From Entomortierella parvispora E1425 (Eukaryota; Fungi; Mortierellomycota): a stretch of DNA of 64,000 nucleotides. Positions 14,801 to 50,774 of the stretch are shown here, one piece after another. Position numbers and translations under genes: made by a program. Every line of letters begins with the position of its first letter. The stretch's first letter is position 1. The notes below the pieces were generated by a model. It worked only from the letters and a program-made list of their open reading frames with translations, did not search any database and had not been told where the DNA came from. Location of the stretch: the NCBI GenBank assembly GCA_020891255.1, contig BQFW01000001.1:1302001-1366000 (forward strand). The letters run 5' to 3'.

Positions 14801-16349
14801 GGATGGCCAAGGTCAGGAGCAGATGCAAATCTCCAACACCACGATGCTGCCACCTTTGCCCCAGAATGCGTACCGAACAGGAAACGAGGAGATCCGGTCT
14901 TTCTCTCCGAGCTCGTCCATCACAACGCTGGTCAATTCTAACAGCGGACAATCACAAAGTCAGAGTGGCGGTAGCAGTCAGCAGGGCAACAGCGAAGGCG
15001 GCGGGAATGGTAGTCTCAGCGGTCACTCTGGTCGAGAGACTACTGGCACTAGCGACAATAGCGGACGCGAGAGAAGCAGTAGTCGGGAGACGAGTAGGGG
15101 TCGAGAGACGAGCTCAGGCGCTGACAACGATTTGAACAGTAGTCCTGCTGCTCAATTGCTGTCAGAGGGCAACTCCAGTGGAGGGGACAGCTCCATGGGT
15201 ACACATTCTCGATCTGTAGAATCGTTTTTCTCGTCCTCCATCATGGATAGTTCTTCCAACACAGAGTCGCCCAACTCGAACGAGGAAGTGTCTAATTCGA
15301 ACGATTGTGGGTCATCATCTTCGGACAATACAGACTCTCGCTCGTCCTCTGCAGATCGCACAATGGCTGGAAGAGCCTCTGGACACGCTCTTTCGCGCTC
15401 GGCTCAAGGAGGAGCTACAGGAGGAGCTTCAAGACATAGTGGTGGTCATTCTTCAGGCAAGGCCAGAGGAAGTGGCGGCACAGGATCGTCCTCTAAAAGT
15501 AGTCGTCGTCGACGGTCCAAGAACTCTGTTTCGCCCTCGGCCTCTGCTGAGTCGTCAACCACTTCCTGTGCTAATTCCTCACTCACGGGAACGATCCAGC
15601 ACCGGCATCACCCTGGCCCACCCCGGCATCAACTCCATTACCGTCAACATCAGCAGGCTCAAGAGAACTCCAGCAACGATGTCGCCAGAACAAGCCATGC
15701 AGGCAATAACAGATCCGGTGGCAGCGGAGTCTCTGGAGGTGGAGCTGGTCCTCGATCAGCCAGCAGTGGCAGCGGCGGTGGCAGCAGTTCTGGCCTCAGC
15801 GGAAGTGTCAGCAGTGGTGGTGGTGTAGGTGGCAATGGTGGTCGCGGTGGTCGTGGTCAAGGTGGGGCTAACGGCGGTAGCAGTTCTGGCGAGGGAGGTA
15901 GTGGAGGTCGCCCCAGGAACAAGAAAAAATATCGTCGTGGTCAAGGCGACAACAGCGGTAACAAAGACGCGCATTCCGTTGTAGTCTCTGATGGAGCCGT
16001 TAGAGGCAACTTGAATGTCGCCCAAGGGGGTGGTAGTAGTGCCATCGGAGGTCTTGTTGGATCTGGAGCAAACACTAAAAAGAAGGGCGGCAGCGGAAAC
16101 TCGAACCGTAACCGTGCCAACAGTGATAGTACCTCGGGATCTGGCTCTGGATCGGGATCTTCTTCTGGCTCTATACGAATGGACCAATCCTCTGACAAGA
16201 TGAGTGTCTCCAGCCCAAGTACCGGTGGAGGACGAACCAAGAGCAACAGGAACCGGTCTAATCATGGCAGGAATAACAGCAGAACTGACACCGGCGCGGC
16301 AAACAGCGGCAACAACAATAACAAAGGTGAAAGCGGTCAACGTCAGTAA
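8884..16349 (+). CDS. Zn(II)2Cys6 (GAL4-type) transcription factor with fungal-specific TF middle domain and very long low-complexity C-terminus (~2,286 aa)
   Basis: CLACRKKKIKCDGQPTCSRCARLGFEC cluster; middle homology region (YLVHVFFECFH...FDVPSMSTLQALLIL...GMAIRMAQEMGLNR...RKTIWWSCYQADRWTSAALGKP). Exons 8884-9131, 9441-11163, 11253-11940, 12035-13324, 13438-16349 sum to 6,861 nt, in frame throughout. Confidence 0.9.
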
Positions 16350-16821
16350 TCACCGTCGGCAAAGAAGGCTTTTCCAATTTCCATCATCCCAGATTGAGAA
16401 CACTGAGAACAGAGTAAAAGATCCCTGGCAACAATGAGGCCGATCATATGTTCACTACTCTTATGACGGGAGACGGGAGATGGGAGAATGGAAACGGGGA
16501 GCTGGTGGCTCAAGGACAATCCAAATCTAGTCGCTCAATATCCTTCAATACGATACCATGTTTTTCCTCTTGCTTTTATTTTTCTCAATAGCTCTCGGAT
16601 GATAAAAACAAACAAAAGTGCCAATGTCAATATCATGTTTTTTTCTTTCTTGCCCTCTCTTGTTTTTTTTTTTTTTTTTGGCTTTCTTGAACTGTTGGCC
16701 GCATATTATGAAGAAAGCTATGAGAGCAGCGTCGATCTATCCGATAAACCAAAGCGTCAGCAAACACACATCATTCATGACTGACAAAAGAAGAATAAAA
16801 TATTTTAGCATTGATCTTTAT

Positions 16822-18180
16822 TTAGCCAATGTAACGACCGTACTTGAGGAACTCTTTGTCTGTCTTCAATCGATCCATATCCTCGTCAATCAAACAGATC
16901 GCGGCAGAGACCTCACCACTGGGAGACTTGGGCATCAGATACATCAAACTGGCAAATGGCGCGAACCGGGGTCTCCTTACCGCCACAGGCTTGCCCAACC
17001 CCATGTTGAAGTCCATGTGCCAGCAGCCATCGACCTTGGACCAGGAACTCAGCATCATGTCCGCAGAGAGGTTCAACGAACTCAGAGGCTGTATGACCGA
17101 CTTGTCGTCTGTCCGATGCAAGAGCGTAGCCATCGCAATGGTTTCTTCTGCCAAGCTCTTTTTGCCCAAAGAACCACGAAGGCGGGACGCGACGACACCC
17201 AGGGGCTCGCTCACGATCTGACCAATCTCCAGGGTTGTGTTGGACATGTTCTGGACCACACCTGGGTACTTGGGCTCCATCCCCAAGGCTCTGCGCATAT
17301 CCACGGCGCGTGAGAAAATGGCCTCGTCGGTCGCGGCCAAGCGCGCACTACGCGCCTTCATGATAGACTGCCAGATCAACGCGCAGAGCGAGTCGTCCGT
17401 GGAAACAAAGCCAGAGGTCACGGTCTCTGACGCGACGGCCTTGAGTGAAGTGAGCGAGGTTTGATCAAAGGAAAAGTAGACCCAAGAAGTGGGGGGTGGG
17501 GGTGGAGTGGCCACGGGCGCTGTTGGGGTGTCCAATGCGGGATCGGAGACGGGCGCCGCGGGTGTGGTAAACTGATCCTCCTGTCCAGTCTTTTGTGAAT
17601 CGTCCAGCATTGGAATGATGCGCTCACGCGCGACATTGGCATTGTCGAGATCTGCGCTGGGGACTTCTTCATGATGACATGCTCTGTTCAAGAGTTCCAT
17701 GGCGACGTCCTGACCAATCATGTCCATGACCTGATGTTGTCCCACAAAGCTGAGCAAGAGTCCTCCTTTTACCAAAGTTGCCTGCACAACAAATGTTGGA
17801 CGGGAGGTGGGCTCGCCAGGAGTACCAGGGATAGTGTTGCGGGGACAGAGCATGTTTTCGTCCATGAGGCTCATTGGGAATTCAGCATTCTCGAGAGTTC
17901 GCCATGAGGGAGCTGTTGGGTCATTGCGAAGATCCTTGACGACCACAGTCGGAATTTCGGCTATGGGTTTAATAATCGACAAGGGCGGGTTGCCTTCGAC
18001 GACGACTTCTCCTGCGGTCCATGGGACCTGAGTGGCAAGACGTTTGAGGCCGTTGTTCAATGTGGACACAACACTGCCGATGCCATGGGCAGAGTCGTCG
18101 TGGACAGGGTAGCATAGCGTGAGCTGGGTATAGAGGTTGAGGCTGGGTTGTTGGCCTAGTGCATCAACTTGGTGGACCAT
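16822..18180 (-). CDS. CoA-dependent O-acetyltransferase of the trichothecene 3-O-acetyltransferase (TRI101)/AYT1 family
   Basis: Single coding exon, 452 aa. N-terminus DALGQQPSLNLYTQLTLCYPV, HxxxD motif HQVMD, DFGWG-equivalent DFNMGLGKPVAVRRP, C-terminus LMYLMPKSPSGE...DEDMDRLKTDKEFLKYGRYIG. All closely match my recollection of TRI101/AYT1. Confidence 0.88.
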   Translation of the reverse strand: MVHQVDALGQQPSLNLYTQLTLCYPVHDDSAHGIGSVVSTLNNGLKRLATQVPWTAGEVVVEGNPPLSIIKPIAEIPTVVVKDLRNDPTAPSWRTLENAEFPMSLMDENMLCPRNTIPGTPGEPTSRPTFVVQATLVKGGLLLSFVGQHQVMDMIGQDVAMELLNRACHHEEVPSADLDNANVARERIIPMLDDSQKTGQEDQFTTPAAPVSDPALDTPTAPVATPPPPPTSWVYFSFDQTSLTSLKAVASETVTSGFVSTDDSLCALIWQSIMKARSARLAATDEAIFSRAVDMRRALGMEPKYPGVVQNMSNTTLEIGQIVSEPLGVVASRLRGSLGKKSLAEETIAMATLLHRTDDKSVIQPLSSLNLSADMMLSSWSKVDGCWHMDFNMGLGKPVAVRRPRFAPFASLMYLMPKSPSGEVSAAICLIDEDMDRLKTDKEFLKYGRYIG

Positions 18181-34879: not shown

Positions 34880-35510
34880 TAGGGTAGTAGTGGTGGAGGT
34901 AGGAAGACGAGTAGTGGTTGTTAAGGCGAGAATGATGAGAAAAGTGAGTTGCTGAGGTTGGTGAATGACAAAGAGGTTTGCGTCTGAGTTGCAGGTATTT
35001 ATATTGAGAGGTGTCTCCCTCTTGACTAAGCAAAAGCACCAGACGCCACTGTGTTCTGCGAGGATCGATTTCGCAGCAAAGGCCGCTGGGTCGTCTCCCG
35101 CAGTTTTTGCCCTTGTGCAACGGGTCTTCAATTCAAGCTTCTCTGTTGCTGCGGCTGCTCTGGTGTGGATCCTGTCGCAGTCGACGCAGCTAAAGTACGT
35201 CTCATGTCCCTTCGCCTCGCCTCTGTTTCATGTGGACATGTCTGCTGCGAGCTTGGCACAAGTGTCCAAAAAGAGAAGATACCGGTCTGCCGGATGCTTG
35301 ATCTGGTCCACAAGGAACCAGTCAGTTCTAAGGTCACGTGCACCCATTTCTCACCCAACCGCCAGACCGCAAAGTGCAATGGAGCTGTCGCCAATGACAT
35401 TCGTCAGGTCTAAATGTACTTGTGTTTCTTCCTCTTCCTCTCTTGTTTTCTTTGTCTTTTCATTGTCCTTGTTCTCTTCCTTACTATCCTTAACCACCCC
35501 AACTCTAGTT

Positions 35511-37424
35511 ATGTCAATAGTGCTCGACACGCCGCCACCAAAGTCAAAAACACTCTTGGTCGAGTGCATGGACCATGTCCTCTCCTACCTCCGATACAAC
35601 CAACTGCCGACTCTAGTCTCTCTCCTGAGAGTCAACAGCACTCTATTTCACCTCACCATCCCTGTTCTCTACAAGAACCCCTTCCTTATCGTTCGCCAAC
35701 ACCGCACCTGGTCTCCGCAAGAAAAAGAAGCGAGATTTGTTCTCCTACTGAAGCTGTTCCTTTTCGAGCTTGATCTGGCACTGCGCGACCAATTGCCTCC
35801 CATCCTGGAAGAAGAGGAAGATGAGGAATGGAACGAGGCTGAAGATGGCTATCTGAATCATCAGCAGAACCAACATAAGCCAAACGAACCCTTGGCTGAT
35901 CAACGCGACATCAAGAAATCAACTCCGGTCCTGCTGAGAGGAGAGGGCGGCTCTCGCAAGTACTTTTATCATTATCGAAATCACGACCATAGCTTCTTGG
36001 CCCAACATGCGATCTCGGCGATGTTTGGTTCAAGGATAAACTACCTGGGTGCCCTGCACTTGCCTTCCCTTTATAAGGCCGCCGCAGCTACGACGAAGGT
36101 CAATCGGAATGGCAACACAATCAACACCAAGATGATTCAGCAAAAAGAGGACACCGACAGATCGATTCTCTCGATCTTGGATCAATTATTTATTATCCAC
36201 TGTGATTACCGTCCTTTGAGCATTTGCATGTCTGTTCTACGGGTTCACCAATTTCGATATGCGCTTCCCTTCTTGTCGACCCTCCAAGGACTGGACATTC
36301 AACATATTGAATCAATCTCGGACGAAGGAGATGAGAATTTGAATACGCTGGTGGATTGGATCCAAACACACGATCGGACCTTTGGAACGCTACGAGAACT
36401 GTCCCTTGGAGGATCAACTGAATTTGACATGTTTGACCTGGGAACTTCTAAAGCCTTGGTTCGAATCCCGCAAGCATTTAGGAAACTCACTGTCCTTGAC
36501 ACTCGATCATGGAGTGTAGGTTGGTCCATGATTGACCAGGTCACTGTTGAGGGCTTGGAAAGACTAGCAATGGATTACGGCGAGGGACGGAACTCTCTGA
36601 ACGGACCTTCACTCTTTACACGGTGTAGAGCTCTGAAGGTACTGGACATCTTTGTTCCAGGGCTCAATACCTTCAAGGCCGTGGCTGATCTTTACAAGAG
36701 ACAGGTGTTGGGTATCGAAGTAGCGTCTTTGAACTCCGAAGGCACAATGGAGGCGCAACCATCAGGTCGATGGACAGAGCCGCCTTGTTTGCCGCCTGTA
36801 GAGAGGCTATACATCTCGGGAAGTCATGCTCCGTTGAAGAATGCACTGGAGGATGCCGCTATTGGACTAAGCCAGACTTTGCGAGTTTTAAAGGCCACAT
36901 CAACGGGGCGACATAATGTCCAAGAATCCACGCTGAGTTTTGGTGAGCCGCTGTTCCAACTACACATGCCATTTTTGCACGAGCTTCAGCTACAGTGGGA
37001 CATTGCACTCGAGTTTCGATTCGAGTTGCTGCAATGCTGTCCAAACCTGACGACTCTGCGGCTATTGGTCAACGGTCTCGATTCTTGTGGTAGGCCCAAC
37101 AACCCTTTGGATCCAATCCTGGGATTAAGAAAGCTGCAGGTCTTGCAGTTGATGGGTCGCTGGCCTCTGACAAAGGAGTTTGTGGATCAAATCCCGATGC
37201 AGTTGACGGGGCTAAAAATTTTAGATCTGGAGAGATGCTTTGGCGTTGGATTGAACGAAGTCATGGAGGCAGTTCAGTCGATGGAGTTCCTGTGGAGGGT
37301 GGGGTGGATCTTGGGAGAGGAGTTTTCGGAGGATGAACAGTTGGAATCATTTTTGGCCTTGTGGAAACAGAAGGCGCCACAAATTCGAGTGGGTGCCATA
37401 GGGTTCAGTGAGTTTCTTACGTAG
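35511..37424 (+). CDS. F-box-like + degenerate LRR/RNI-like protein (lineage-expanded family), intronless, 637 aa
   Basis: N-terminal LLVECMDHVLSYL...LVSLLRVNSTLFHLTIPVLYKNPF F-box-like motif; LRR-like repeats (LRELSLGG, LKVLDIFVP, CPNLTTLRL, LKILDLERC). Likely ATG is 35511, not the ORF start at 34965. Confidence 0.75.
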   Translation: MSIVLDTPPPKSKTLLVECMDHVLSYLRYNQLPTLVSLLRVNSTLFHLTIPVLYKNPFLIVRQHRTWSPQEKEARFVLLLKLFLFELDLALRDQLPPILEEEEDEEWNEAEDGYLNHQQNQHKPNEPLADQRDIKKSTPVLLRGEGGSRKYFYHYRNHDHSFLAQHAISAMFGSRINYLGALHLPSLYKAAAATTKVNRNGNTINTKMIQQKEDTDRSILSILDQLFIIHCDYRPLSICMSVLRVHQFRYALPFLSTLQGLDIQHIESISDEGDENLNTLVDWIQTHDRTFGTLRELSLGGSTEFDMFDLGTSKALVRIPQAFRKLTVLDTRSWSVGWSMIDQVTVEGLERLAMDYGEGRNSLNGPSLFTRCRALKVLDIFVPGLNTFKAVADLYKRQVLGIEVASLNSEGTMEAQPSGRWTEPPCLPPVERLYISGSHAPLKNALEDAAIGLSQTLRVLKATSTGRHNVQESTLSFGEPLFQLHMPFLHELQLQWDIALEFRFELLQCCPNLTTLRLLVNGLDSCGRPNNPLDPILGLRKLQVLQLMGRWPLTKEFVDQIPMQLTGLKILDLERCFGVGLNEVMEAVQSMEFLWRVGWILGEEFSEDEQLESFLALWKQKAPQIRVGAIGFSEFLT

Positions 37425-38115
37425 ACCCAGAGAAAGAGACGAAGTGAACCCAGGTTGCCCGGTTGAGCGGGTGCGACGGGCGCAATAAACAAGAACAGTA
37501 GAAACAAAGAGGAGTGGAGCCGCACAAAGTGTCCAAAAAAATGCAAGGTGCCCTTTCACGCGCTCCTGCGCTGAATGAATTTGTGGGAGACCTTCCACGA
37601 ATTCCATGGACAAACTTCCCACGAAGGCAAAAGCTTGAGACAGGGAAGACACACAGGAGGGAAGTAGGAGATGAAAAGACAGAGGGGAGGAAAGAGAAAA
37701 CGAAAAGGATCTGATAAGGTCCACCCGCATCGGAGTCGGAACGGAGCTGGTCTGACTTTTTCTCACCGGGACCGCCTCACTCATCTCCAAGATCTGATAA
37801 CGAGAATCTCTTTGGGTAGCGGGCTTTGTGTTAGTTGGCCTAGCTTAGTCTTTACCGGGGTTGAGTGGGTCTGAATGGAAAACAGACTGTGCAGCGTGTT
37901 GTTCCATCGCTTCCAAGGAGAGGGCGTGTGTTGTTCACCGCAGCATCTTGTTCTGTGCATCCAGAAAGTATAAGAGGCTGCCTGCCCACTCGCCACTTTT
38001 TTTTTCCCCTCACCTGTACGCCTTTTCCTCTTTCTTTCTTTTTTACCTTTCTTTCATTCGCATTCATTCCTCATTCCTTTTTGTACATTCTTCTTTCATG
38101 TACATTACTCCAAAC

Positions 38116-39170
38116 ATGCATCCCATTCGCTCCCTTCTCTCCTTGACTGCCCTCTCAGCTTTGGCCCTGGCCGCCGTTGTCCCCCACAACTGCCGTGATA
38201 CCAACAACCAGGTCTCTGCCGCTGGCGAGTCCCTTGAGCAGGCCGCTGGACTGGCCCGTAACCTCGTCAAGAACACCAACGTTGGAACCTTCATGACCGT
38301 AATGAACAGTGCTCGTCAGGAAGGACGTCTCGAGGGTAAACATCGCAGGATGATTCTTGTCAATCCTATCAAGTTGCCAATATTCCGCCGTTGGTCAAAG
38401 AACTCGTGTTAATGATTTTTTTTCCCTCTTTTTTCATAGGTTACCCCTTCGGAAGCATGGATTACTATGTGGATGATTGCGACCAGCCCGGTACTCCCTT
38501 GATGTTGTTGTCCAGCTTGCAGATCAACATCAAGAACGCCGAGACGAACAACAAGGTCTCGCTCGCCATCCGTAAATTGCCAGCAGAGGGCGAGAAGGGT
38601 AACCCCATGGTGGATCCTCGCGTTACTCTGATGGGACACTTGGTCCCCGTGGACAAGGAGAAGGTAAAAAAAACACAAACAAGTGTATGAGAGAGTGAGA
38701 GCAGGACAAAGAACACAGAGAGCAAATTGCAAAACGACCACAACAACAAAAGAGTTGGGTACATAACCAAAGATGGAGAAAAAGGTGCCAGCTGGCAGGA
38801 AAACTCTTTTGGTTAAAAAGAAAGAAAAAAGGTGTTTGAGCTTCTACGGACCTGATGCTTATTGCTCTTTTGCTCACCGCCTGCCCGTCTTTTCATTCTT
38901 TAATAGCACGCTCGCGCCGAGGCCTGCTTTGTTGCCAAGCACCCCGAGGCCAAGTGGTGGTTGCCCGGTGCAGGATTCCATGACTTCAAGTGGTACAACA
39001 TGGAGATTGATGATATCTACTACATCGGAGGCTTTGGTGGCATCCATTACATCGGCTGGATCGATGTTGCTACCTACTACGGTGCTGATAACTTGTCTTC
39101 GACGAAATTGATGTTGGATGAAGCTGATCTTGAGTCTTTGTCTTCATCATTGTTGTTGCAGCGCCAATAG
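38116..39170 (+). CDS. CREG-like secreted/vacuolar protein (FMN-binding split-barrel/PNPOx-like fold); three exons
   Basis: Signal peptide MHPIRSLLSLTALSALALAA; AAGLARNLV...G|YPFGSMDYY...LMLLSSLQINIKN...PRVTLMG...CFVAKHPEAKWW...HDF...IYYIGGFGG. Confidence 0.82.
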
Positions 39171-39864: not shown

Positions 39865-40896
39865 ATGCCCCGAAAAAAAGCAGATCCAACCCTCGCCTCC
39901 TCGGTCTCGTCTACTGAGGCACACGCGCAACCAGATACAATGCGTATTACTCCCGCTCCCGACGCACAAGAGAATACCTCATCATCCTTCACTCCGGGCA
40001 GGGCTGTCAAACGCAAAATGGAAGCGACTCCTGGAGATTTGAACGGTGAACCGCGGTCAAAGCCTAAGCGAACCAGGAAGCCCACCGTTGATTCCAGCAA
40101 GCAAGCTAGTTCTTCGTCTTTCTTATCTTCTACCAACGCCATACTCCCTATAGCTCCTGAAATCGTGAAATCAGCGGCAGAGCGTCTTCCCTCCGAAGTG
40201 TGGCACTTGATAATGAACTACCTGCCTACATCCCATGTGGTACCTTTGGCGTCCGTTTGCAGAACTCTTCTCCGCGATTGTTTGTTGTGGCCATGTTGGA
40301 GGACCATCTGCGAAGAAAACAAGCTTGGGGAACCGAAACGAAAGTACAAATCGTACATGGCCTTGGTCTGCTCTGAATCCTGCTACATGTGTGACCGCTG
40401 CGACCTCCGGAGCACTGGCACGGGCCAGTTCAAGCGAGATGAGATCCCCCTCAGGATCAAGAACATGGGCGATCAAGGTCATGTCTGGCAGCTCTGCCGA
40501 GACTGTCGCCTCGACTACTACGACCTGTTCCCAGAGACTGAATTTCTGAACAGGGTGGGCACCCATGGAGTAACCTTGTCCTGGATCCGTGACCATCTCC
40601 ATTTGAAGCTAGAAGATCTTAGGGGAGTGGACTTCTATTATGAGCAGCCGGACTTGGAAGAGCGATACGAGTGGGAATCGGAGGAGGAGGCGTACTATCG
40701 TCTTGAACGCGCTGCAAACACGGTGGGTATCTTAAAATACCCAAAGAATCAAGTCTACTGGGTGGCGCTGACCAAGTACGGAGGTACGGTGGGCCTAGGT
40801 GCGGTCCAGCGAAAAGTTGCTTTGGAAGTGTTGAAGGCTTACAAAAGAAGAAAGTACCCCGCTCGAGCTGCTGAGATTGACGCACAAAGTATGTGA
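39865..40896 (+). CDS. F-box + C4 zinc-finger/XPA-like domain protein, array copy 1
   Basis: Basic N-terminus (KRK...KPKRTRK); F-box LPSEVWHLIMNYLPTSHVVPLASVCR; CDRC...CRDC; C-terminal 'YPKNQVYWVALTKYGGTVGL'. Confidence 0.82.
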   Translation: MPRKKADPTLASSVSSTEAHAQPDTMRITPAPDAQENTSSSFTPGRAVKRKMEATPGDLNGEPRSKPKRTRKPTVDSSKQASSSSFLSSTNAILPIAPEIVKSAAERLPSEVWHLIMNYLPTSHVVPLASVCRTLLRDCLLWPCWRTICEENKLGEPKRKYKSYMALVCSESCYMCDRCDLRSTGTGQFKRDEIPLRIKNMGDQGHVWQLCRDCRLDYYDLFPETEFLNRVGTHGVTLSWIRDHLHLKLEDLRGVDFYYEQPDLEERYEWESEEEAYYRLERAANTVGILKYPKNQVYWVALTKYGGTVGLGAVQRKVALEVLKAYKRRKYPARAAEIDAQSM

Positions 40897-41332
40897 AGAT
40901 GTGACCAACTACAGGGTACCGATGACCCTTTTACCACTGCATCCATTCTTTTGAGTTCACGTTCAAGTGTTCAAACGTCAAGCAATAAAAACAAATCTGT
41001 GCAACTCGTCCGTTCTGTTGACAGAGGAAAGGTGGAGGTCAATGCACTGACATAGTCAATCTTCGCATGTTCTTCTGTGGTCCTAATTTTTTTTTTTTTG
41101 ACGCAATGACTACATTCAGAGGGGTGGCCTATCGACAATAAAAAAAAGGGAAGAGCTCAGACTTTTGGTGATTGTGACATTGTGTTATTTGATCAACAAA
41201 GGCCAAAGTCTCTTTGTCTTTTTCGTTCCTCCCCTTCCTCTCCTTGTCTTTCCCCTCTGTTATTCCTTGTTCTATTCTTCCTCTTCTCTGCTGCCGCTTG
41301 TTTCTTTACTTTTCTATCCAGGATCTACAATC

Positions 41333-42289
41333 ATGAAAAACATTCAGTCAAGCTCGCTCTCTCTTCCAGACTCTGACAATACTCTTGGACATGGTGGTCA
41401 AGTTCTCGGATCGATCATCACTTCCTGGAATCACAGTATCGACTCCATGCAGCCCGATCCCAAAACCGGTCAACGACGACGCCAAGCCAAGCGACAAAAG
41501 ACGAAGGCGACCACAGATGGAGGCTCGGGAGAAGAACAACATCTTGTTCGTTTGCCTAACCAAGGCGAAGGACTCGACTCGGATAGTTTTCTGATCTCGG
41601 AATCAGCCTTTATCGACACTCAAGATCCCGCCGCCAGGTTGCGTCGAATCGTGGGAAGAATGCCTCCAGAGATCTGGCACCTGATCTTCTCTTTCATGCC
41701 CACGTCCCATGTCCCACCCGTGTCTTTAGTTTCGAGAACCATGCTGGATATTTGTCGAACATGGCCCCGTTGGAGATTTATCTGCCGTGCAAACAACCTC
41801 GGAGAGCCAAAGCGCAAATATCGATCCTACATGGCCTTGGCTTGTTCTGAGTCTCATTACATCTGCGATATGGGGGACAGTCGAAGCACGGGCACTGGAC
41901 ATTTCCGATCCTCTGAACTTCCATTACCAGTCTTGAATCAAGAGGATGGACAGGTGTGGCGACTGTGTATCGGCTGTCGGTGGACCTATTACGATCGCTA
42001 TCCGGAGCTTGACTTTCTGGAGCAGATCGACGTCAACAGTCAAGTGAGCGGACAGTGGGTTCGAAAACATTTGTTCGTGGACAGTGCCCACATGAAGGCC
42101 TTGAACCCCACCCGAGATCACACGAACTGGGCCATGAGTGAGATGACGGCTACAGAATATGCACTGGAGATTCATGGAGGTCTTGTCGGACTGTTGGCAG
42201 TCAAGAACAAGCTCTCCAGGGACGTCTTGGTCAAGTATCGGCTGCGAAAGAAAGAGGATGGGGCGGGACTGTGCCGCGACAGACGCTAG
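41333..42289 (+). CDS. F-box + XPA-like domain protein, array copy 2 (one Zn-ligand Cys replaced by Gly)
   Basis: MPPEIWHLIFSFMPTSHV; LGEPKRKYRSYMALACSES; CDMG...CIGC; EYALEIHGGLVGL. Confidence 0.8.
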   Translation: MKNIQSSSLSLPDSDNTLGHGGQVLGSIITSWNHSIDSMQPDPKTGQRRRQAKRQKTKATTDGGSGEEQHLVRLPNQGEGLDSDSFLISESAFIDTQDPAARLRRIVGRMPPEIWHLIFSFMPTSHVPPVSLVSRTMLDICRTWPRWRFICRANNLGEPKRKYRSYMALACSESHYICDMGDSRSTGTGHFRSSELPLPVLNQEDGQVWRLCIGCRWTYYDRYPELDFLEQIDVNSQVSGQWVRKHLFVDSAHMKALNPTRDHTNWAMSEMTATEYALEIHGGLVGLLAVKNKLSRDVLVKYRLRKKEDGAGLCRDRR

Positions 42290-42519
42290 GGCGTGAGCCC
42301 TTCCTTTGAGGAAACAACCCTGCGCAAATCCCCGGATTTACTGCAGTTGCACCGCGCACCCATTATTTTTTGTTTTCATTTGCTCGTTGCCACCACCAAC
42401 GTGGGCACAAACAAACTCCGAGAGATGGAATAAACTGCGATTTGCTCTTTCTTTTCTTTCTCATCTTTCATCCACTCAATTTTGCGTCAACATCCCACTT
42501 TATTTGCTATCTTGCTACT

Positions 42520-43455
42520 AATCACCAACCAGACAACAACAGACTCCTCGTTATCGGACCGTCGTCCACTTAATCGTTCACAGAGGTCAACATGACTCGA
42601 AAGTTATGGACCAGACCAGATGAAGGAGATAAATGGAAACAAGGAAGTCGAGGCTGCTACTTCGTACTCCTTGATCACAATGGAGGCTGCCGTGGCGGAA
42701 CCAATGCCTGCCTTGCTGCATCTCCCCCCAGAGGTTGGAAACATGTCCTCTCTTTCTTGCCAACGTCCCATGTTGCTCGTCTACCTTTGTTTCGATGCAG
42801 CTGTTCAATTTCTGTTCATTCAATGGTCAAAAAGATCACCCCACTAGCAATGTTTGGATCTGAAGAAAACCGGACTGTGATCTTACAGAGTAAGGAATCA
42901 AATATGATCACCATGGAGAACTATCTGCGAAGTGAGCCGATTGGGCGAAACCTAAGAGAAAATACAGGTCCCACATGGCCCTGGTCTGCTCCGAGTCGTA
43001 CTACATTTGTGACCAATGCGACAGTCGAGGCACTGGCACAAAATCGCATGGACAAGCTGGTCCCTGTTTCCCGCCTGGATGACCGGGGTCATGGGTGGCA
43101 ACTCTGCAGGAAATGTCGCATAGAGTACTATCAGATGCACCATGCACCCAGAGATGAAGGAGGTCCTGAGCAAGATTGATGTGAAGGATGAGGTATCGGA
43201 GTATAACATTATTCGCCAATTGAAGCTGAGGCATGGTGATCTCTCTGCATTGGCGAGTAGGATCACAGACGTCAACCAGGTCTATTTTATGCCCGAGAAC
43301 GTCATGTTCAACACGCGAGAGGTGACTGCACACGCAACGGCAGTGCATGGGGGCCCTGTAGGAGTTGTGGCTGCCAGGGGTTGACACCCATTATGACGCT
43401 GTGCCCAAGTACAGGCTGCGGAAGCAAAGAAATGCTTGTATAAATATACAATAAG
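42520..43455 (+). pseudogene. Frameshifted pseudogene of the F-box/XPA-like family, array copy 3 (closest to copy 4)
   Basis: Homologous segments lie in three frames: MEAAVAEPMPALLHLPPEV / WKHVLSFLPTSHV / PKRKYRSHMALVCSESYYICDQCD / WQLCRKCRIEYY / EVTAHATAVHGGPVGV. At least 4 frameshifts plus an insertion. Confidence 0.85.
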
Positions 43456-43610
43456 CCAGTTTTTCCACCTTGAATAAAATCAATAGAAAAGGGTACTTTT
43501 TTCGTCAGAGTGATGTTTATGTTTCTTTCCATCATCCACTTGCTTTTGCATCAACCCTCATCCCGATCCCCAAATATTACCATCACATACTGCCAGAGAG
43601 TCCTCAAACT

Positions 43611-44567
43611 ATGACTACCAACGAAGAAGCAATAACCAACCATTCCACCGAAGCGGGTCCTCGTCGATCTAAGCGTCTACTTCAACGAAAGATTGACTCG
43701 GAGGCTGTGGAGCAGGGCGAACCAAAGGAAGAGCATCGCGAAGAAGAAATCAGGCCGAAAAAGAAAAGACTTTGTCGACCGAGAAAAGCCGCGAAGACAA
43801 GGGGTACCGCAGAACCCAAAGTGATCACCGATGATGATATGGAAATGTTCGTAGCGGAGCCGACGCCTCCTCTATTGCTTCTTCCTCCAGAGGTGCTGCA
43901 TCACGTCCTTTCGTTCATGCCAACATCTCAGGTTGCGCCCTTGTCCTTGGTCTCGACACGTCTGCTTGAGATTTGTCGTTCCTGGCCCCGATGGAGGACC
44001 ATCTGCAAAGTGAGCCAGCTGGGCGAACCCAAATTGAAGTACAGGTCCCATATGGCTCTGGTCTGCTCCGAGTCGTGCTACATTTGTGACCTATGCGATG
44101 GTCGAAGCACCGGCACAGGATTCTGTGGGCTTGCTGGTCTTCCCCTCTCTGTCTCTCGTACGGATGATCAGGATTGCTGGTGGCGACTCTGCAAGCAATG
44201 CCGTATCAAGTACTATGAGGAGCATCCCGAAACTGAAGACATCCTGAGCACGATCCACCCCAAAGATGAGATTTCAGAGTACGACATCATTCGTGAGTTG
44301 AAGCTGAAGCATGAAGAACTCTATCGATTTGATCGTCGGTCAGTGGGCTACCAGAGCTTCTACAGCCGTCGACGGTTTTACAATCCAAGCAACTACTTGT
44401 TCAACACACGGGACGTGACGGAGTATGCGATGGACGTGCATGGAGGTTGGGTCGGGGTCTTGGCAGCCAGGAACCGTTATTGTTCTCATGTCTTGGAGAC
44501 TTACAGGCTGAGGAAGAGACTGGACCAGCTTCTCCCCCAAAAAAAGCCAGCCATTGCCGAAGCTTGA
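43611..44567 (+). CDS. F-box + C4 zinc-finger/XPA-like domain protein, array copy 4
   Basis: RRSKR...RPKKKR NLS-like; LPPEVLHHVLSFMPTSQV; CDLC...CKQC; ISEYDIIRELKLKHEEL...LFNTRDVTEYAMDVHGGWVGV. Confidence 0.82.
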   Translation: MTTNEEAITNHSTEAGPRRSKRLLQRKIDSEAVEQGEPKEEHREEEIRPKKKRLCRPRKAAKTRGTAEPKVITDDDMEMFVAEPTPPLLLLPPEVLHHVLSFMPTSQVAPLSLVSTRLLEICRSWPRWRTICKVSQLGEPKLKYRSHMALVCSESCYICDLCDGRSTGTGFCGLAGLPLSVSRTDDQDCWWRLCKQCRIKYYEEHPETEDILSTIHPKDEISEYDIIRELKLKHEELYRFDRRSVGYQSFYSRRRFYNPSNYLFNTRDVTEYAMDVHGGWVGVLAARNRYCSHVLETYRLRKRLDQLLPQKKPAIAEA

Positions 44568-44843
44568 ATTCAGATGAATGCCTTTTTTTTTCTTTGTGAT
44601 CAGTCCAAATAAAGAGCAGCCCCACTCAGCCTTTATTTTCGCAGAGGTTCTCATCTTTATTTGGAAAGAGCGAGCGCACCGCCATCGTCTGCACTGTGGT
44701 CAGCGAAGACGTCCTGCTTGTCCACTTTCTCTGCTTGTCTATTTTCTCTCTTTCTCTTTCTCTCTCTCTCTTTCTACTCTGTATCAATTTTACCTTTGCT
44801 ATTCGTCTTCAATTGTGTGGTCAGAGACCCCTTCCTGGTGACA

Positions 44844-45959
44844 ATGGCGCGTGCACGAATCATCGAGTTGCCACTCCCTCGTCCTCCACAAGCACCACTG
44901 TTGTTCACCACAGCCATGCACCCTCTGCACATGTACGTCTCTCATGAAGATTACAGCCCGCCTGAGACTTTGTCCCTCAGGGACATTGCCCCCAGATCCA
45001 TCGATCGCGTTCCTCTTGAGATCTGGCACAGAATTTTTGATTTTTTACCCACCTCCCAGGTCGCGATCACAGCTGTGGTGTCCAGGGATTTCCTGGAAGC
45101 TGCTCAAACCTGGGACCGCTGGATCAATATCTGCCTTTTGAACGGTCTGAAGGGTAACCGGCACATTTACAAGTCCGAGATGACTCTGGTTTGCTCAGAG
45201 TCGTACTTTATCTGTGATCTCTGTGACAAGAGAACGACAGGTGAGGGGCGTTTTACGTCTTGCCAGATCCCCATACCGGTGTTGAACAAGGCCGACAATG
45301 GATTGATATGGCGGCTTTGTGCCCATTGTCGAACTAACTACTACAAGGCATTTCCGGATGATGAGTCCATTCTGCATGGGATCGCTTCAGATGTCATGGT
45401 CTCGACCGATTGGGTTCGCACGCACCTTTGTGTGGACTTGGTTGACATCAAAGTACAGGAATCAGAGGCAGAAGCACTTGCGGAAAACAGAGGTCCAATT
45501 GGGTATAGGTTGGCGGACGGATCAACAGTGTTCAGGTTTTGGGATATGGTGAAGTGCACAAAGGAGATCCACGGAGGATGGGTTGGTTTTGCAGCGGCCA
45601 AGAATGGGAAGGCATCCACGCTTCGATTCATGCTCCAGCTACGCAAAGCTCGAGATGAGACCTTGGCGCTTCTCCGTCGAAGACAGCGGTCATGGCTTCA
45701 AAAAGATGGCAGCTATCAAGACGAGTCCGTCGATATCCTCACCTACTCGGGTGATGAAGAGGAAGACATGGAGACCCTTTTTGATTTCCAGGACGAAGGC
45801 ATCGTGGCTCCCCCTAGAGCTGAATCTAAAGCCGTCAATGTTCTGCGGGCCCCAAATGAATCCGTGCAGACGGTCCCTGACACTGAAAGCATATCAGCCA
45901 GGACCTTTTCCAGCTCGGGGGATGGAGCTGGTGAGAGTCTTCTCGGCTATTGCGGATGA
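44844..45959 (+). CDS. F-box + C4 zinc-finger/XPA-like domain protein, array copy 5
   Basis: VPLEIWHRIFDFLPTSQV; LVCSESYFICDLCD...CAHC; FRFWDMVKCTKEIHGGWVGF; acidic C-terminal extension. Confidence 0.82.
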   Translation: MARARIIELPLPRPPQAPLLFTTAMHPLHMYVSHEDYSPPETLSLRDIAPRSIDRVPLEIWHRIFDFLPTSQVAITAVVSRDFLEAAQTWDRWINICLLNGLKGNRHIYKSEMTLVCSESYFICDLCDKRTTGEGRFTSCQIPIPVLNKADNGLIWRLCAHCRTNYYKAFPDDESILHGIASDVMVSTDWVRTHLCVDLVDIKVQESEAEALAENRGPIGYRLADGSTVFRFWDMVKCTKEIHGGWVGFAAAKNGKASTLRFMLQLRKARDETLALLRRRQRSWLQKDGSYQDESVDILTYSGDEEEDMETLFDFQDEGIVAPPRAESKAVNVLRAPNESVQTVPDTESISARTFSSSGDGAGESLLGYCG

Positions 45960-46701
45960 GGATCGGAACGCATGGAGAGAAGCACGACCTATCAAACCTC
46001 AAAAATCAAATAAAACCAAGACCAAAAAGGCAACACAAAGCATGATCGCCTGCACCGTGGGGCCCAAATTTGCGCTCCACATCACCATCATCATGACCTG
46101 GTAACAGCGATGTTCTGTTTGACAAATAAAGGGATTAAAAGACATGGTTGACGAGAACTTGTGGAGGCTTGCCTTCAGGTCACTGTCTGTTACTGATTCC
46201 AATGGTCATCCATTTCTGCCATCGAGTGTTAATCCGGGGTTACCAGGTCGTGAGCATCAATTGCTTTCAACGCTGAGCTGATTGGTCCTTAGCGGGCGCT
46301 TTGTCACTCCATAGCCTACATAAAGATGAGCTGCACGAGCCGCAAGGGCAGAAGGGAAAGGGAGAAAAAAGTAAGGGGAATCTAGGACTCACGTCCAAGG
46401 CTTCGCAGATTTCTCCTGGCAGGCGGCTTTTTTTTTATGCAAAAAGCTCAATACTTTCAAGCTGAAGATGATACGGATCAGAAAGCCCATGCTGCAGGGT
46501 CGCCTCAAGGGCGCCTTCGTGTGATGGTCTAGATCCTTTCGCATAATCCACAATCATCCCTTGTCCTGTGAACCTCGCTGCTGGGTAGAAACGAGCTTTT
46601 AAATCACAGTTGTGGAATTTTCACTCTTTCATCTTCTCCCACGCACAGCTACAACCTCCGCCCTGCCATCCTCCCCCACTGAAATCACAAGTACAAACAC
46701 G

Positions 46702-48536
46702 ATGGAGTTTTACGAAAAGCATCAAGTTGTTCTGCTGACAGGCGGAACTGGCTTCGTTGGCAAGGCCCTTCTCGAAAAGATTTTGCGCTCTCTGCCGCAG
46801 GTGAAAAAGTACGAGTGAGAAAAAAATGCAACTCGAGTTTGCTTGCCTGCTGACGATTGTTATTTCAGGATCTATCTTCTTGCTAGAGCAGCGGACGAGT
46901 CGAGTCTCCGAAACCGCGTGAATAAGGAAATCTTTGACTGTCCACTCTTTGGACCACTTAAAGCGCAATTCAAAAATGACCAAGAGTTTCAAGACAGGAT
47001 CGTAGCCAAAGTCGTGCCTCTCTTGGCAGATCTGACGCTGGAAGATCTAGGACTCTCGACTAAAGTCCAGGCGATGGTCCAAGCAGACACATCTGTTGTT
47101 CTTAACTGCGCTGCAGATGTGGGCTACCACCATTCTTTTAAGCATGCCGTGAAGGTAGGGCAGAGCAACCTAGGAAACGTGCAGAAGCGATGTTTTGTGC
47201 AGCCAATTGACTCCCAAAAATGCTTTTTGTGAAACGTACCCCCATGTTTTTTGTTGCAAAAAACAGAACAATTGCTACGGCCCCCTTCATGTGTTTCAAC
47301 TCGCCCAAGGGATGCCCAATCTGGCCTCTCTGGTCCATGTCTCGTCTTCGTACGTCAACGGTCCCTATGGGCCACAGCTCAGAGAAGTCTTTTACCCGTA
47401 CCCGCTTGGTGATCCCGACCAACTCTTCAAAGCGTTTGAGACTATGTCCGATGAAGAGATGAGCCGATTTGAAAAGGACATTGTTCTCAAAGTCTTCTCC
47501 AACACGTACACAGCTTCCAAAGCGTTGACAGAACATCTCATCAAGACTTGGACGCGTACAATGGATCTACCCGTGGTGATTGTGAGACCAGCCGGCTGCA
47601 CTGGTGCGCTTCTCGAGCCTATGCCGGGGTGGGTTGAAGGGCTGGGAAGTTACAATGGAATCACCCTAATGATGGCCCTCGGAAAAATCGACGGAATGAT
47701 CGGTTCAGAGGTAATGAGTCTCTGACGAGGGGTTTTATTCATGACCAGAATGATCTGGTAACAGACTTTGACCTGCTTCTACTTTGAACGTATCTCCTTC
47801 CAAGCATCACATCGTTGATTTGATTCCAGTTGACTATGTGTGCAAGATTATCCTTATGGCCGCCACTCAAGCCCAACGAGGCACCTCAATGGTCCCCATT
47901 TTCCAAGTCGGAACCAGTTCTCACCATGCGATTTCGTTCAGGTATCTCCACAACTCCATCATGGACTACTGGCGAGCAGCTAAGAAAGCGACTCAAGACC
48001 CAAAATCCAAGATCGTAGACAATGTGCAGGCAGTCATGTACCCAAGTTACATTGACTTCCATCTACAGTTCTTGAAGCGTTTTTCTAAAGAACTTGAATT
48101 GCTTTCCAGAGCACAAGATGGGGCGGTTGCAGGAGAGGTAGACCGAGAAAAGATTCGCCGGCGGTTGCTGCAGGCGTATAGAATCCCGAAGCTGCATTAC
48201 CCATTCTCATCGACACAATGGGTGTTGGACGCGTCGAATGCTGTAGGGTTGGATGCGATGGCTCCTGAGCCTTTGAAGTGCGGAATGAAGAGGGAAGGCA
48301 ATTGGTTTGACTGGGACGAGTATTTGTATGTCTACAATCGAGGGCTGCACGAGTTTGCTTTGAAGGAGAAGGTGGAGCGGACAACAAGACCCTCGACAAA
48401 GGAATCAAATAGCCAAAAGGGAGAGGATTCAACAGGGTGGGCCCTCAAGAATTCAATCCAAAGCCCTGCTCAATTGGATGATGGCATTGACATGCAAGAG
48501 ATTCAGCGAAACCTGGACCTGTTGTCCCGCCTTTGA
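46702..48536 (+). CDS. Fatty acyl-CoA reductase (alcohol-forming; NAD_binding_4 + Sterile/male-sterility domain); four exons
   Basis: LLTGGTGFVGKALLEKILRSLPQVKK|IYLL, LNCAADV, VHVSSSYVN, NTYTASKALTE (YxxxK), VIVRP...EPMPGWV, DLIPVDYV, C-terminal DWDEYL...GLHEFALKE. Confidence 0.88.
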
Positions 48537-49061
48537 AGATATGAATATGAGTAGCACAATAATAGCACACCATCATTCTTGACCAATAACGCTGGGCAAG
48601 CAGCATCGTGGGCGATGGGACCATGTACGGCCTTGCGGTCATGGGTCTATCCCGCCTTTTGGAGTCTGTGTTTGTTTTCTGTTTTGTTGGCTCTTTGCAG
48701 ATAACCCCCTTGGCCTTGATTCTAAACTTTCGCTATCAGCTCCCTTTATAAGGGCCCACTGTGGAGATGAATTGACTTGGAGATGGAGAACAGGCTGACT
48801 CCGCTATCAATCCTTTTCACTAGTTCAGGTCACCCACACCGGAGCGCAATGAGAGTTGATGAAGACGTAAAAATTCCACACGGATGACAAAAAGGGTCTC
48901 AGAGCACTCTCGTGATGACGATTTTTTTTTTTTTTACTCTTTCATTTCTCTTTGTCTCACCGCCATCTGTTCGAGACAACGTCCTACTTGTGTCTTTCAA
49001 CCCCCACAGTCAACTCGATCTCTTTTCTTTCCCTCCCTTCCCTCTCTATCTCTCGTCCGCT

Positions 49062-50774
49062 ATGAACCTTGACAATGGCATCAACGCGACCAAAAATAAC
49101 ATTGCCAAGGATATTCATACCCCAAAAGACGTATTTGATGTCATACCTTTGGAGATCCTAGATCAGATTCTTGGTCATCTGGATCACGCCAGCCTCTATA
49201 ACTGTTTAACCCTCTCGACTCGATGGTCAGATCGAGTGGTGCCCCATCTGTGGGCGTCACCTTGGATGATGTACTACATTTCATGGACAAAGATGATCTG
49301 CATCGTGGCCAAGAGTGCAGAAAAAGCCCAAAAACAAACTGATAAGACAACTGCTTCTGTGGATGCGGGACGTGAATCAAAAAGAGCAAGTCAGAAGGTT
49401 GGATTGAGCGAGAACGAGAGTGGATCGTGTTTTATACCTTCGCCTCAAGTACAACACCAGAACGATGGTCATGGATCTGTCTCTAGAGACTCTGCCTTGG
49501 ATACACACACTGCGCAACGCTGGCGTTTCAGAGAGGAAGGTGGTGGAAACACGATGAGATTCACCAGAGGCTACACAGATAGCTTTGCTGAGGAGGATGA
49601 CGACCGCAGCGACAGTGATGCTCATGTGGAAATGGACGGGATGTGGAAGGAGGAGGACACGCGACGACCATTGCTGCCCAAAGCGGCAAGGCCGTCCTCC
49701 TTACCGTTTGACGCGGTGGTGTTGTCGTCGCACAACGGGTCAACTACAACTCTTCGTGCTCCTCGAACAACACTAGGGTACGGCGATTATATTCGTACCC
49801 TCGACTTTTCACAACTGTACTATATCATCTCTGACCAATTCCTATCCCATCTCCTGCCTCTCACCCCCAACCTCGTCTCCCTGACCATTCACTCCCCAAA
49901 ACAACTCTCAGATCTCTCATTGATTCTCTTGGCCGCTTCCTGTCCTCAACTCTCCCTCTTGGATTTGGCGGGCTGCACAAAAATCACCAACAGAGGCCTT
50001 GACGCTCTCTTGGAGAACTGTGGCAATATGTCCAGCCTGAATCTCGCCAACGGCACAAGAGCCCTCTCAGACAGAACTTTGGAAGGGATCGCAAAGCGAT
50101 GGGGCAGGACCTTGAAGAGCTTGAACCTTGCCAATACTAGTTCTGGCTCGGCCATGGGGTCTTCCACTATGGTTACAGGTGCAACATCAACAACAACTGC
50201 TCGCGACGAGGAAAATCTCGGGTCGTTCTCGGTCCAAGACCCTGGCCTGTTGACGATCGCGATCCATTGCCGATCTCTACAATCACTCAATATCTCTCAA
50301 TGTATTCTCCATTGCTCGCCCTCTTCTACTTACTCCTCGTCCCCAGCCCTCTCCCCACCCTCCTCGCCAACATCTCAGTTTTCTTCCTCCTTCACATCCA
50401 TATCTTTATCAAGTGGATCCCCGAACAGTAACGACACTCCGGAGAAAGGGACATTGGAGGCCTTCCTCTCGCAACTCCCTCCATCATTGCAAGTTCTCAA
50501 TCTTCGCTCTTGTTTTGATCTCTCAGACAAGGGCTTGATCGCCCTGGCAAGGGCCTGTCCGGATCTCCGGGAATTGGACATCACTGCCTGTTCCTTGGTC
50601 ACGGACTGGGGCGTCCGGGCCATTGGGGAAGGATGTCGACAGTTTGAAACGTTGATCATGGACGATCGCTATGGTCGTGTTACGGATCAACTGCTGAAGT
50701 CCTTTCCGCCTTGGGGCGACCAATTGTTACAAAGGAGAGTCATGCTCGGCTGGAGATACTCACGTATCTTTTAA
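49062..50774 (+). CDS. F-box/LRR-repeat (FBXL, RNI-like) protein, intronless
   Basis: F-box IPLEILDQILGHLDHASLYNCLTLSTRW...VPHLW; YGDYIRTLDFS; cysteine-containing LRRs (CPQLSLLDLAGCTKITNRGL, CPDLRELDITACSLVTDWGV). Confidence 0.85.
   Translation: MNLDNGINATKNNIAKDIHTPKDVFDVIPLEILDQILGHLDHASLYNCLTLSTRWSDRVVPHLWASPWMMYYISWTKMICIVAKSAEKAQKQTDKTTASVDAGRESKRASQKVGLSENESGSCFIPSPQVQHQNDGHGSVSRDSALDTHTAQRWRFREEGGGNTMRFTRGYTDSFAEEDDDRSDSDAHVEMDGMWKEEDTRRPLLPKAARPSSLPFDAVVLSSHNGSTTTLRAPRTTLGYGDYIRTLDFSQLYYIISDQFLSHLLPLTPNLVSLTIHSPKQLSDLSLILLAASCPQLSLLDLAGCTKITNRGLDALLENCGNMSSLNLANGTRALSDRTLEGIAKRWGRTLKSLNLANTSSGSAMGSSTMVTGATSTTTARDEENLGSFSVQDPGLLTIAIHCRSLQSLNISQCILHCSPSSTYSSSPALSPPSSPTSQFSSSFTSISLSSGSPNSNDTPEKGTLEAFLSQLPPSLQVLNLRSCFDLSDKGLIALARACPDLRELDITACSLVTDWGVRAIGEGCRQFETLIMDDRYGRVTDQLLKSFPPWGDQLLQRRVMLGWRYSRIF

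Follow-up and report, generated by a model that had tools for sequence, protein, structure and literature searches.

A tandem array of F-box genes

The window analyzed in this study is a stretch of 64,000 nucleotides from the soil fungus Entomortierella parvispora E1425 (assembly GCA_020891255.1, contig BQFW01000001.1, positions 1,302,001 to 1,366,000 of the forward strand). Between positions 39865 and 45959, its + strand carries five head-to-tail paralogs, here called c1 to c5, and the list of open reading frames (ORFs) together with tblastn comparisons identified four of these as intact and one as a frameshifted pseudogene. A tandem array of five paralogs with one dead copy had been proposed for this DNA in an earlier note made from the sequence (the original prediction), and this was borne out. 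The intact copies encode F-box proteins in which the F-box is followed by a four-cysteine (C4) zinc module and by a C-terminal module related to the DNA-binding domain of XPA and Rad14. These proteins, and the fungal family to which they belong, are the subject of this analysis.

All five genes lie on the + strand. The first gene, c1 (39865-40896), encodes 343 aa, with the F-box at 40186-40311, the C4 zinc module at 40312-40536, and the XPA-like module at 40537-40854. It is followed by c2 (41333-42289, 318 aa), with the F-box at 41660-41785, the zinc module at 41786-42007, and the XPA-like module at 42008-42250. The pseudogene c3 spans approximately 42592-43444, and its nearest paralog is c4 (43611-44567, 318 aa), the copy used for structure modeling. 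In c4, the F-box (43881-44006), zinc module (44007-44231), and XPA-like module (44232-44516) are arranged in the same order, and a variable loop (44331-44402, model residues 157-180) occupies the position of the beta-hairpin of XPA/Rad14. The last gene, c5 (44844-45959, 371 aa), contains an F-box at 45009-45134, a zinc module at 45135-45359, and an XPA-like module at 45360-45647, after which it continues as an acidic tail of ~100 aa. Introns in the four intact genes were ruled out, as the orthologs align colinearly.

The other intact proteins shared 31-38% identity with c1 over their whole length, identity to c4 from the F-box onward was 33-45%, and tblastn matches between copies (E 1e-35 to 1e-54) were far beyond chance. 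The shared motifs listed in the original prediction were all present, namely an LP.E.W F-box, the linker W..IC...LGEPK.KY.S.MALVCSES, the C-x2-C pairs, and a terminal HGG.VG helix. Two of its details did not hold for every copy: c2 lacks the second cysteine, and c5 lacks the basic N-terminus. Basic clusters resembling nuclear localization signals (NLS) were found in c1, c2, and c4.

The presence of an F-box was confirmed in all four intact copies, which scored 22.3 (c1), 30.8 (c2), 33.0 (c4), and 22.4 bits (c5) against Pfam PF00646, for which the gathering score is 20.5 bits. The N-terminal parts of these proteins gave no further Pfam match, and a feature search of the ESM Atlas returned generic F-box clusters only. 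Residues 1-70 of the c4 model superposed on the Skp1-bound F-boxes of FBXO3, Cdc4, and Fbw7 with Z 6.8-7.5 and a root-mean-square deviation (rmsd) of 2.3-3.8 over 64-70 residues. With FBXO31 included, these superpositions of a predicted model gave Z 6.8-7.5 and rmsd 2.3-4.3 over 64-71 residues.

The c3 copy is a pseudogene. It matched the other copies in three reading frames by tblastn, and DNA alignment with c4 and with the copies of a colinear metagenome contig (L001, described below) identified an N-terminal deletion, several 1-base indels, an 83-base insertion (42822-42904), deletions of 8 and 15 bases, and a 7-base insertion. The counterpart of c3 in L001 (8923-9826) is also broken, through different lesions, and no frameshift common to the two pseudogenes was found by DNA alignment. 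The 83-base insertion lies at the exact site of a 1-base deletion in the L001 copy, and no second copy of the insertion was found within the window.

The c5 gene has been annotated differently in GenBank. The c5 protein was identical at 338 of 341 positions to the first 338 aa of GJJ68017.1 (Entomortierella parvispora), with differences only at the end of the alignment. This 872-aa entry, named alcohol-forming fatty acyl-CoA reductase, combines c5 with a downstream reductase gene (window 44844-48536); ~30 codons ahead of the c5 stop, the model exits the c5 frame and runs on into that gene. The reductase motif GGTGFVGKALLEKILRSLPQVKK was present both in a window ORF at 46612-46818 and in P0003. 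GJJ68017.1 looks like a gene-prediction fusion, because c5 ends at a stop of its own (45959). The array has some value for annotation, since GenBank merges one of its genes with a fatty acyl-CoA reductase gene. An exact copy of c4 was not found in one protein search. Approximately 3 kb downstream of the array, an unrelated F-box gene (48912-50774, +) encodes 620 aa with an F-box-like domain and leucine-rich repeats.

The contig L001 and the window run colinearly from the zinc-finger and CREG-like genes upstream of the array across all of its genes. L001 holds the same five-gene order, including the dead counterpart of c3, and ends within c5. The c1 ortholog (L001 6329-7375) showed 76% protein identity and a ratio of nonsynonymous to synonymous substitution rates (dN/dS, by the Nei-Gojobori method) of 0.14. 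The corresponding values were 74% and 0.18 for the c2 ortholog (P0004 / L001 7760-8707) and 64% and 0.22 for the c4 ortholog (P0001). The c5 ortholog was 72% identical over the first 64 residues, where L001 ends, and its start is conserved (L001 11217-11408). Overall, dS for c1, c2, and c4 was 0.76-0.99 with dN/dS of 0.14-0.22. By part, the F-box, zinc, and XPA-like modules gave 0.03-0.20 and the N-terminal tails 0.26-0.45; within c1, constraint was strongest on the F-box (dN/dS 0.03).

The array is old, and each copy is maintained by purifying selection, including the variable loop. This argues against the rapid birth-and-death evolution that the original prediction had read from the array, which is contradicted by the same array, dead copy included, in a relative at this divergence; the dN/dS test proposed alongside it was run and indicated purifying selection. 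No similarity was found among the intergenic spacers, and a recent burst of duplication was ruled out, since both species have the array and its spacers bear no relation to one another. Just upstream of the array, a CREG-type beta-barrel gene that is apparently split by introns (37861-38690, +) marks the synteny with L001, and an 819-aa ORF (34965-37424, +) without a Pfam match retains ~80% DNA identity there. Clustering of family members was also observed in Gryganskiella cystojenkinii (L002, JAAAIG010000600.1), in which four to five copies are packed into 8 kb (positions 9038-16913). P0002, a deposited 497-aa model from this locus (10001-12493), spans two copies (10412-10831 and 11744-12469) and may merge two genes.

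Ancestry and structure of the C-terminal module

The original prediction had likened the C-terminal part of these proteins to XPA/Rad14. Searches with the window proteins themselves gave no XPA match in Pfam, either with full proteins at E ≤ 1 or with C-terminal domains at E ≤ 10, and XPA_C (PF05181) was not detected at E ≤ 10 in six members of the window clade. Profiles of four and six window-clade sequences returned no XPA chains from the Protein Data Bank, only the FBXO31 F-box and chance zinc-finger matches. The likeness was recovered with a profile of 74 family sequences, which matched human XPA (E 5.9e-10), yeast Rad14 (E 3.4e-7), and a domain of SLC30A9 (E 3.5e-5). The alignment to XPA placed ITK, A, Y.L, DL, NP, and M.LY in order, with the family HGG opposite the WGS of XPA, and it covered residues 105-226 only of the 273-aa XPA chain. 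Among the 74 aligned members, Pfam recognized the F-box in 64 and XPA_C in 46 (best E 1.1e-10), and P0008, P0011, P0022, and P0037 exceeded the 25-bit Pfam cut-off for XPA_C. The window-clade profile reaches canonical members of the family at E down to 4e-37, and some of these carry XPA_C above the cut-off. The claimed relationship therefore stands through the family profile and through structure, but not through the window copies or their clade profile, which match no XPA.

Structural evidence was obtained from an AlphaFold2 model of c4 (residues 85-318). With a 74-sequence alignment, the mean predicted local distance difference test (pLDDT) score was 90.8 and the predicted template modeling (pTM) score was 0.85, whereas a 6-sequence alignment gave a pLDDT of 61.9 and an unusable model. 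The only low-confidence stretch inside the model was the c4 loop (block pLDDT 53-76). Because pTM was high, the model indicates that the F-box, zinc, and C-terminal modules would form a single rigid unit.

A structure search independent of Foldseek was carried out against 48,161 representative Protein Data Bank chains. Only 10 chains reached Z ≥ 5; eight of these hold F-boxes or F-box-like domains, and the other two are Rad14. For model residues 129-214, Rad14 was the top structural match (5g32_A, Z 6.2; 5lcl_B, Z 5.5), followed by XPA and SLC30A9 (Z 4.4), and two aligner runs gave Z 6.1-6.2 for Rad14 against the c4 model. Foldseek searches of the Protein Data Bank and Swiss-Prot models found F-box matches only, with XPA chains at poor E values of 1-6. 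The best match among AlphaFold DB clusters was another unnamed F-box protein with a template modeling (TM) score of 0.62. On the sequence statistics and the structural match together, we take homology of the C-terminal module to XPA_C as established.

The zinc module supported a different conclusion. The four cysteine columns were kept in 74, 71, 74, and 73 of 74 family sequences, respectively, and an arginine follows the last cysteine in 73 of 74. The two C-x2-C pairs are separated by 30-31 residues in the window copies (C-x2-C-x31-C-x2-C), while the XPA sequence has a spacing of 17 residues. None of the 74 family members matched XPA_N at E ≤ 0.1, and the zinc module of the c4 model did not align to the XPA finger in structural comparison; its matches were weak and fell on FYVE domains and ribosomal zinc ribbons (Z 3.3-3.7). 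The XPA-like C4 finger of the original prediction was not upheld, given a spacing of 31 versus 17 residues and the absence of any XPA_N match in the family. HMMER paired the second CxxC of the family with the first CxxC of XPA. Because Cys-x2-Cys-Arg is common to both, the sequences suggest that pairing second with second may be the true correspondence. In c2, the second ligand cysteine is replaced by glycine (CDMGD, window 41864-41878), and the same change is found in its L001 ortholog (P0004); despite the glycine, the c2 zinc module is strongly constrained, with a dN/dS of 0.04.

A fungal family and its motif-less clade

When the window-clade profile was used for an exhaustive search in HMMER, 148 clusters were identified at E ≤ 1e-3, 83 of them at E ≤ 1e-10. 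The family count is taken from this search, as a word-indexed protein search had found two relatives only. The source was looked up for 20 of the 148 clusters, and all 20 were from Mortierellomycota (Mortierella, Linnemannia, Podila, Dissophora, Actinomortierella, and Entomortierella) or Mucoromycota (Umbelopsis, Fennellomyces, Phascolomyces, Apophysomyces, and Circinella). AlphaFold DB additionally contained weak F-box matches from other fungi, with TM scores below 0.4. Except for two fused gene models, the named sources were labelled "hypothetical" or "F-box domain-containing protein". The F-box plus XPA_C family is real, uncharacterized, and comprises ~150 clusters. The module was also observed in long proteins such as P0071 (Actinomortierella ambigua, 1182 aa) and P0046 (Podila humilis, 1455 aa). 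Relatives of this type carry extra domains, either an in-between-RING (IBR) half-RING and two F-boxes or an endonuclease/exonuclease/phosphatase domain, which may be real fusions or merged models.

Most family members contain the sequence RITK..A...Y.L...DL..L......RNP.YR.A.PMRLY...V...A..VHGG.VG. In the family alignment, the ITK, NPxYR, and PMRLY motifs were lost from the window copies and from P0001-P0004, P0006, and P0013. These ten sequences form one clade in the maximum-likelihood tree, with 100% support in the Shimodaira–Hasegawa-like approximate likelihood ratio test (SH-aLRT), and no member keeps more than one of the three motifs. The clade is flanked on both sides by lineages that have the motifs, Mucorales and Umbelopsis among them, and the tree, which has a midpoint root only, implies at least five separate motif losses across the family. 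On the alignment and tree, the window copies are an apparently derived clade that has been stripped of the XPA signature.

The same clade differs at the hairpin. This stretch has a fixed length of 19 residues in canonical members and varies from 11 to 37 residues in the window copies, with net charges from +4 to −7. The loop of c1 is the longest and most acidic (37 aa, net −7), that of c2 is the shortest (11 aa), and that of c5 has a net charge of −3. Loops were sharply different between paralogs and nearly unchanged between orthologs. The XPA-like core had a net charge of 0 to −5 in the window copies, compared with a family median of +1. Lys141 and Lys179 of XPA are important for DNA binding. 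At the columns equivalent to these residues, 51 of 74 and 40 of 73 canonical relatives, respectively, had lysine or arginine, whereas the window copies had E, L, G, or T at the first and Y, K, A, or V at the second.

Possible functions and known systems

We consider it probable that the window proteins are substrate receptors of Skp1–cullin–F-box (SCF) ubiquitin ligases that carry a repurposed XPA scaffold. The F-box and the linker helices behind it would dock on Skp1 of the ligase, the C4 module would bind zinc, and the basic clusters of c1, c2, and c4 would allow these three proteins to enter the nucleus. The former XPA module would then act as a scaffold presenting a paralog-specific loop, and the loop of each paralog would select a different target for ubiquitylation. 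A protein would be a likelier target than damaged DNA. A built-in DNA or damage sensor, as envisaged by the original prediction, is unsupported for the window copies: because the ITK, NPxYR, and PMRLY motifs are lost and the XPA-like core is neutral to acidic, no such sensor is indicated, and no direct match to XPA was found. Several observations weigh against the reading as SCF receptors with a repurposed scaffold. Parsimony is the basis for the direction of motif loss, as the tree was rooted only at its midpoint, a Z of ~6 is middling when taken alone, c2 is without one zinc ligand, and the C-terminal helix is basic in every copy (net +5 to +6), which would suit residual binding of nucleic acid.

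That helix is also part of the case for an alternative that we regard as unlikely, in which the window copies still bind damaged, junction, foreign, or transposon DNA and bring the SCF ligase to proteins located there. Such binding would be in keeping with the homology of the module to the XPA/Rad14 DNA-binding domain, with the NLS-like clusters of c1, c2, and c4, and with the basic residues that canonical relatives keep at the Lys141 and Lys179 columns. In the window copies, however, the first of these columns holds E, L, G, or T and the second has no conserved basic residue, the loops standing in for the hairpin are acidic in c1 and c5, the core carries no net positive charge, and the clade gives no direct XPA signal. 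The fold is no proof of DNA binding either, as SLC30A9 has the same fold without a demonstrated role on DNA. Some F-box proteins, such as yeast Rcy1 and Ctf13, operate outside SCF ligases. The window proteins could be of this kind, partnering Skp1 alone, outside the cullin ligase, and serving as structural or regulatory chromatin factors, and their modest F-box scores of 22-33 bits would fit. We think this improbable, given that the F-box and linker superpose best on genuine SCF receptors and that no part of c1 is under tighter constraint than the F-box.

Two further explanations would deny the proteins either a function or an XPA ancestry. The array might be decaying junk, a set of gene relics with chance open frames, and it does contain a copy that is dead in both species and another that lacks a zinc ligand; intact orthologs of c1, c2, and c4 at dS 0.76-0.99, with dN/dS of 0.14-0.22 overall and 0.03-0.20 in the domains, make this barely credible. 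Convergence, or a generic likeness among folds of zinc and helices, would account for the failure of the window copies alone to match XPA, for the Foldseek E values of 1-6, and for the weak resemblance of the zinc module to FYVE domains and ribosomal ribbons. It is very improbable as an alternative to descent, as the family profile reaches XPA at 6e-10 and Rad14 at 3e-7 with the motifs aligned in order, several relatives pass the curated Pfam cut-off for XPA_C, and Rad14 is the top structural match of the module. A wider and more speculative proposal, to which we assign a low probability, is that nucleic-acid structure directs the SCF ligases of the whole family. Canonical members would locate kinked, junction, or lesion DNA through the XPA-type module and ubiquitylate proteins stalled at such sites, and the arrayed motif-less copies would be a diversified, innate-defence-like branch whose paralog-specific loops recognize diverse targets of foreign or selfish origin (endobacterial, viral, or transposon proteins, for example). 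If canonical members do bind damaged or branched DNA, the family would directly link the recognition of lesions or junctions to SCF ubiquitylation in early-diverging fungi. The window clade, for its part, may illustrate how a DNA-contact domain can lose its contact motifs and become a loop-presenting recognition scaffold.

Earlier literature on such proteins is scarce. Searches for "XPA-like" together with "F-box" found no paper, and searches on Mortierella F-box expansion and on SLC30A9-XPA found nothing relevant. The claim that no system of this architecture has been characterized holds, although the architecture itself had been noticed. Kose et al. 2023 (Nucleic Acids Res, PMC10810185) described a clade with F-box or F-box-like matches and XPA_N/XPA_C matches in hmmscan, located near a cation-efflux (SLC30A9) clade. 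This F-box clade served as an outgroup, was said to be without conserved cysteines, and was discarded as remote homologs with no analysis. It is probably the same family, in which we find the four cysteines nearly invariant but differently spaced.

Close counterparts of the window proteins are clear homologs with a canonical F-box plus XPA_C arrangement (E 1e-37 to 1e-13), such as P0008 (Mortierella sp.), P0011 (also Mortierella), P0022, P0056 (Umbelopsis), and P0078 (Fennellomyces). They share 21-45% identity from the F-box to the end, the four cysteines, CR..YY..HPE, and HGG.VG with the window copies. They differ in keeping the XPA_C signature and the fixed 19-residue hairpin, and their usual length is greater, at 350-800 aa with extended N- or C-terminal regions.

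XPA is a scaffold of nucleotide excision repair. The XPA/Rad14 DNA-binding domain and the family have a common order, in which a C4 zinc site precedes a beta-alpha-alpha-hairpin-alpha-alpha-long-helix module, and both have an arginine after the second CxxC. In the family, an F-box precedes this module and an extra helix (R..YY..HPE) follows the zinc finger. The regions of XPA that bind RPA (RPA32), ERCC1, and TFIIH are absent, as the alignment covers only residues 105-226, and in the window copies the hairpin and the ITK, NPxYR, and PMRLY motifs are missing as well. Outside of repair, the XPA DNA-binding fold is otherwise known from SLC30A9, a human zinc transporter, and here it is joined to an F-box across a fungal family. 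The N-terminal XPA_C-like domain of SLC30A9 (PDB 2ENK) belongs to the same superfamily (profile E 3.5e-5; Z 4.4 over 92 residues) and is an instance of the fold outside nucleotide excision repair. It differs in lacking an F-box and, within the solved piece, a C4 finger, and in being joined to a membrane transporter.

Classical SCF receptors (Fbw7/Cdc4, FBXO3, FBXO31, and Skp2) have an F-box and following linker helices, as the window proteins do, and the overall plan of an F-box followed by a recognition domain is common to both. In the window proteins, the recognition part consists of a zinc module and an XPA-derived fold instead of WD40 repeats, leucine-rich repeats, or another of the usual types.

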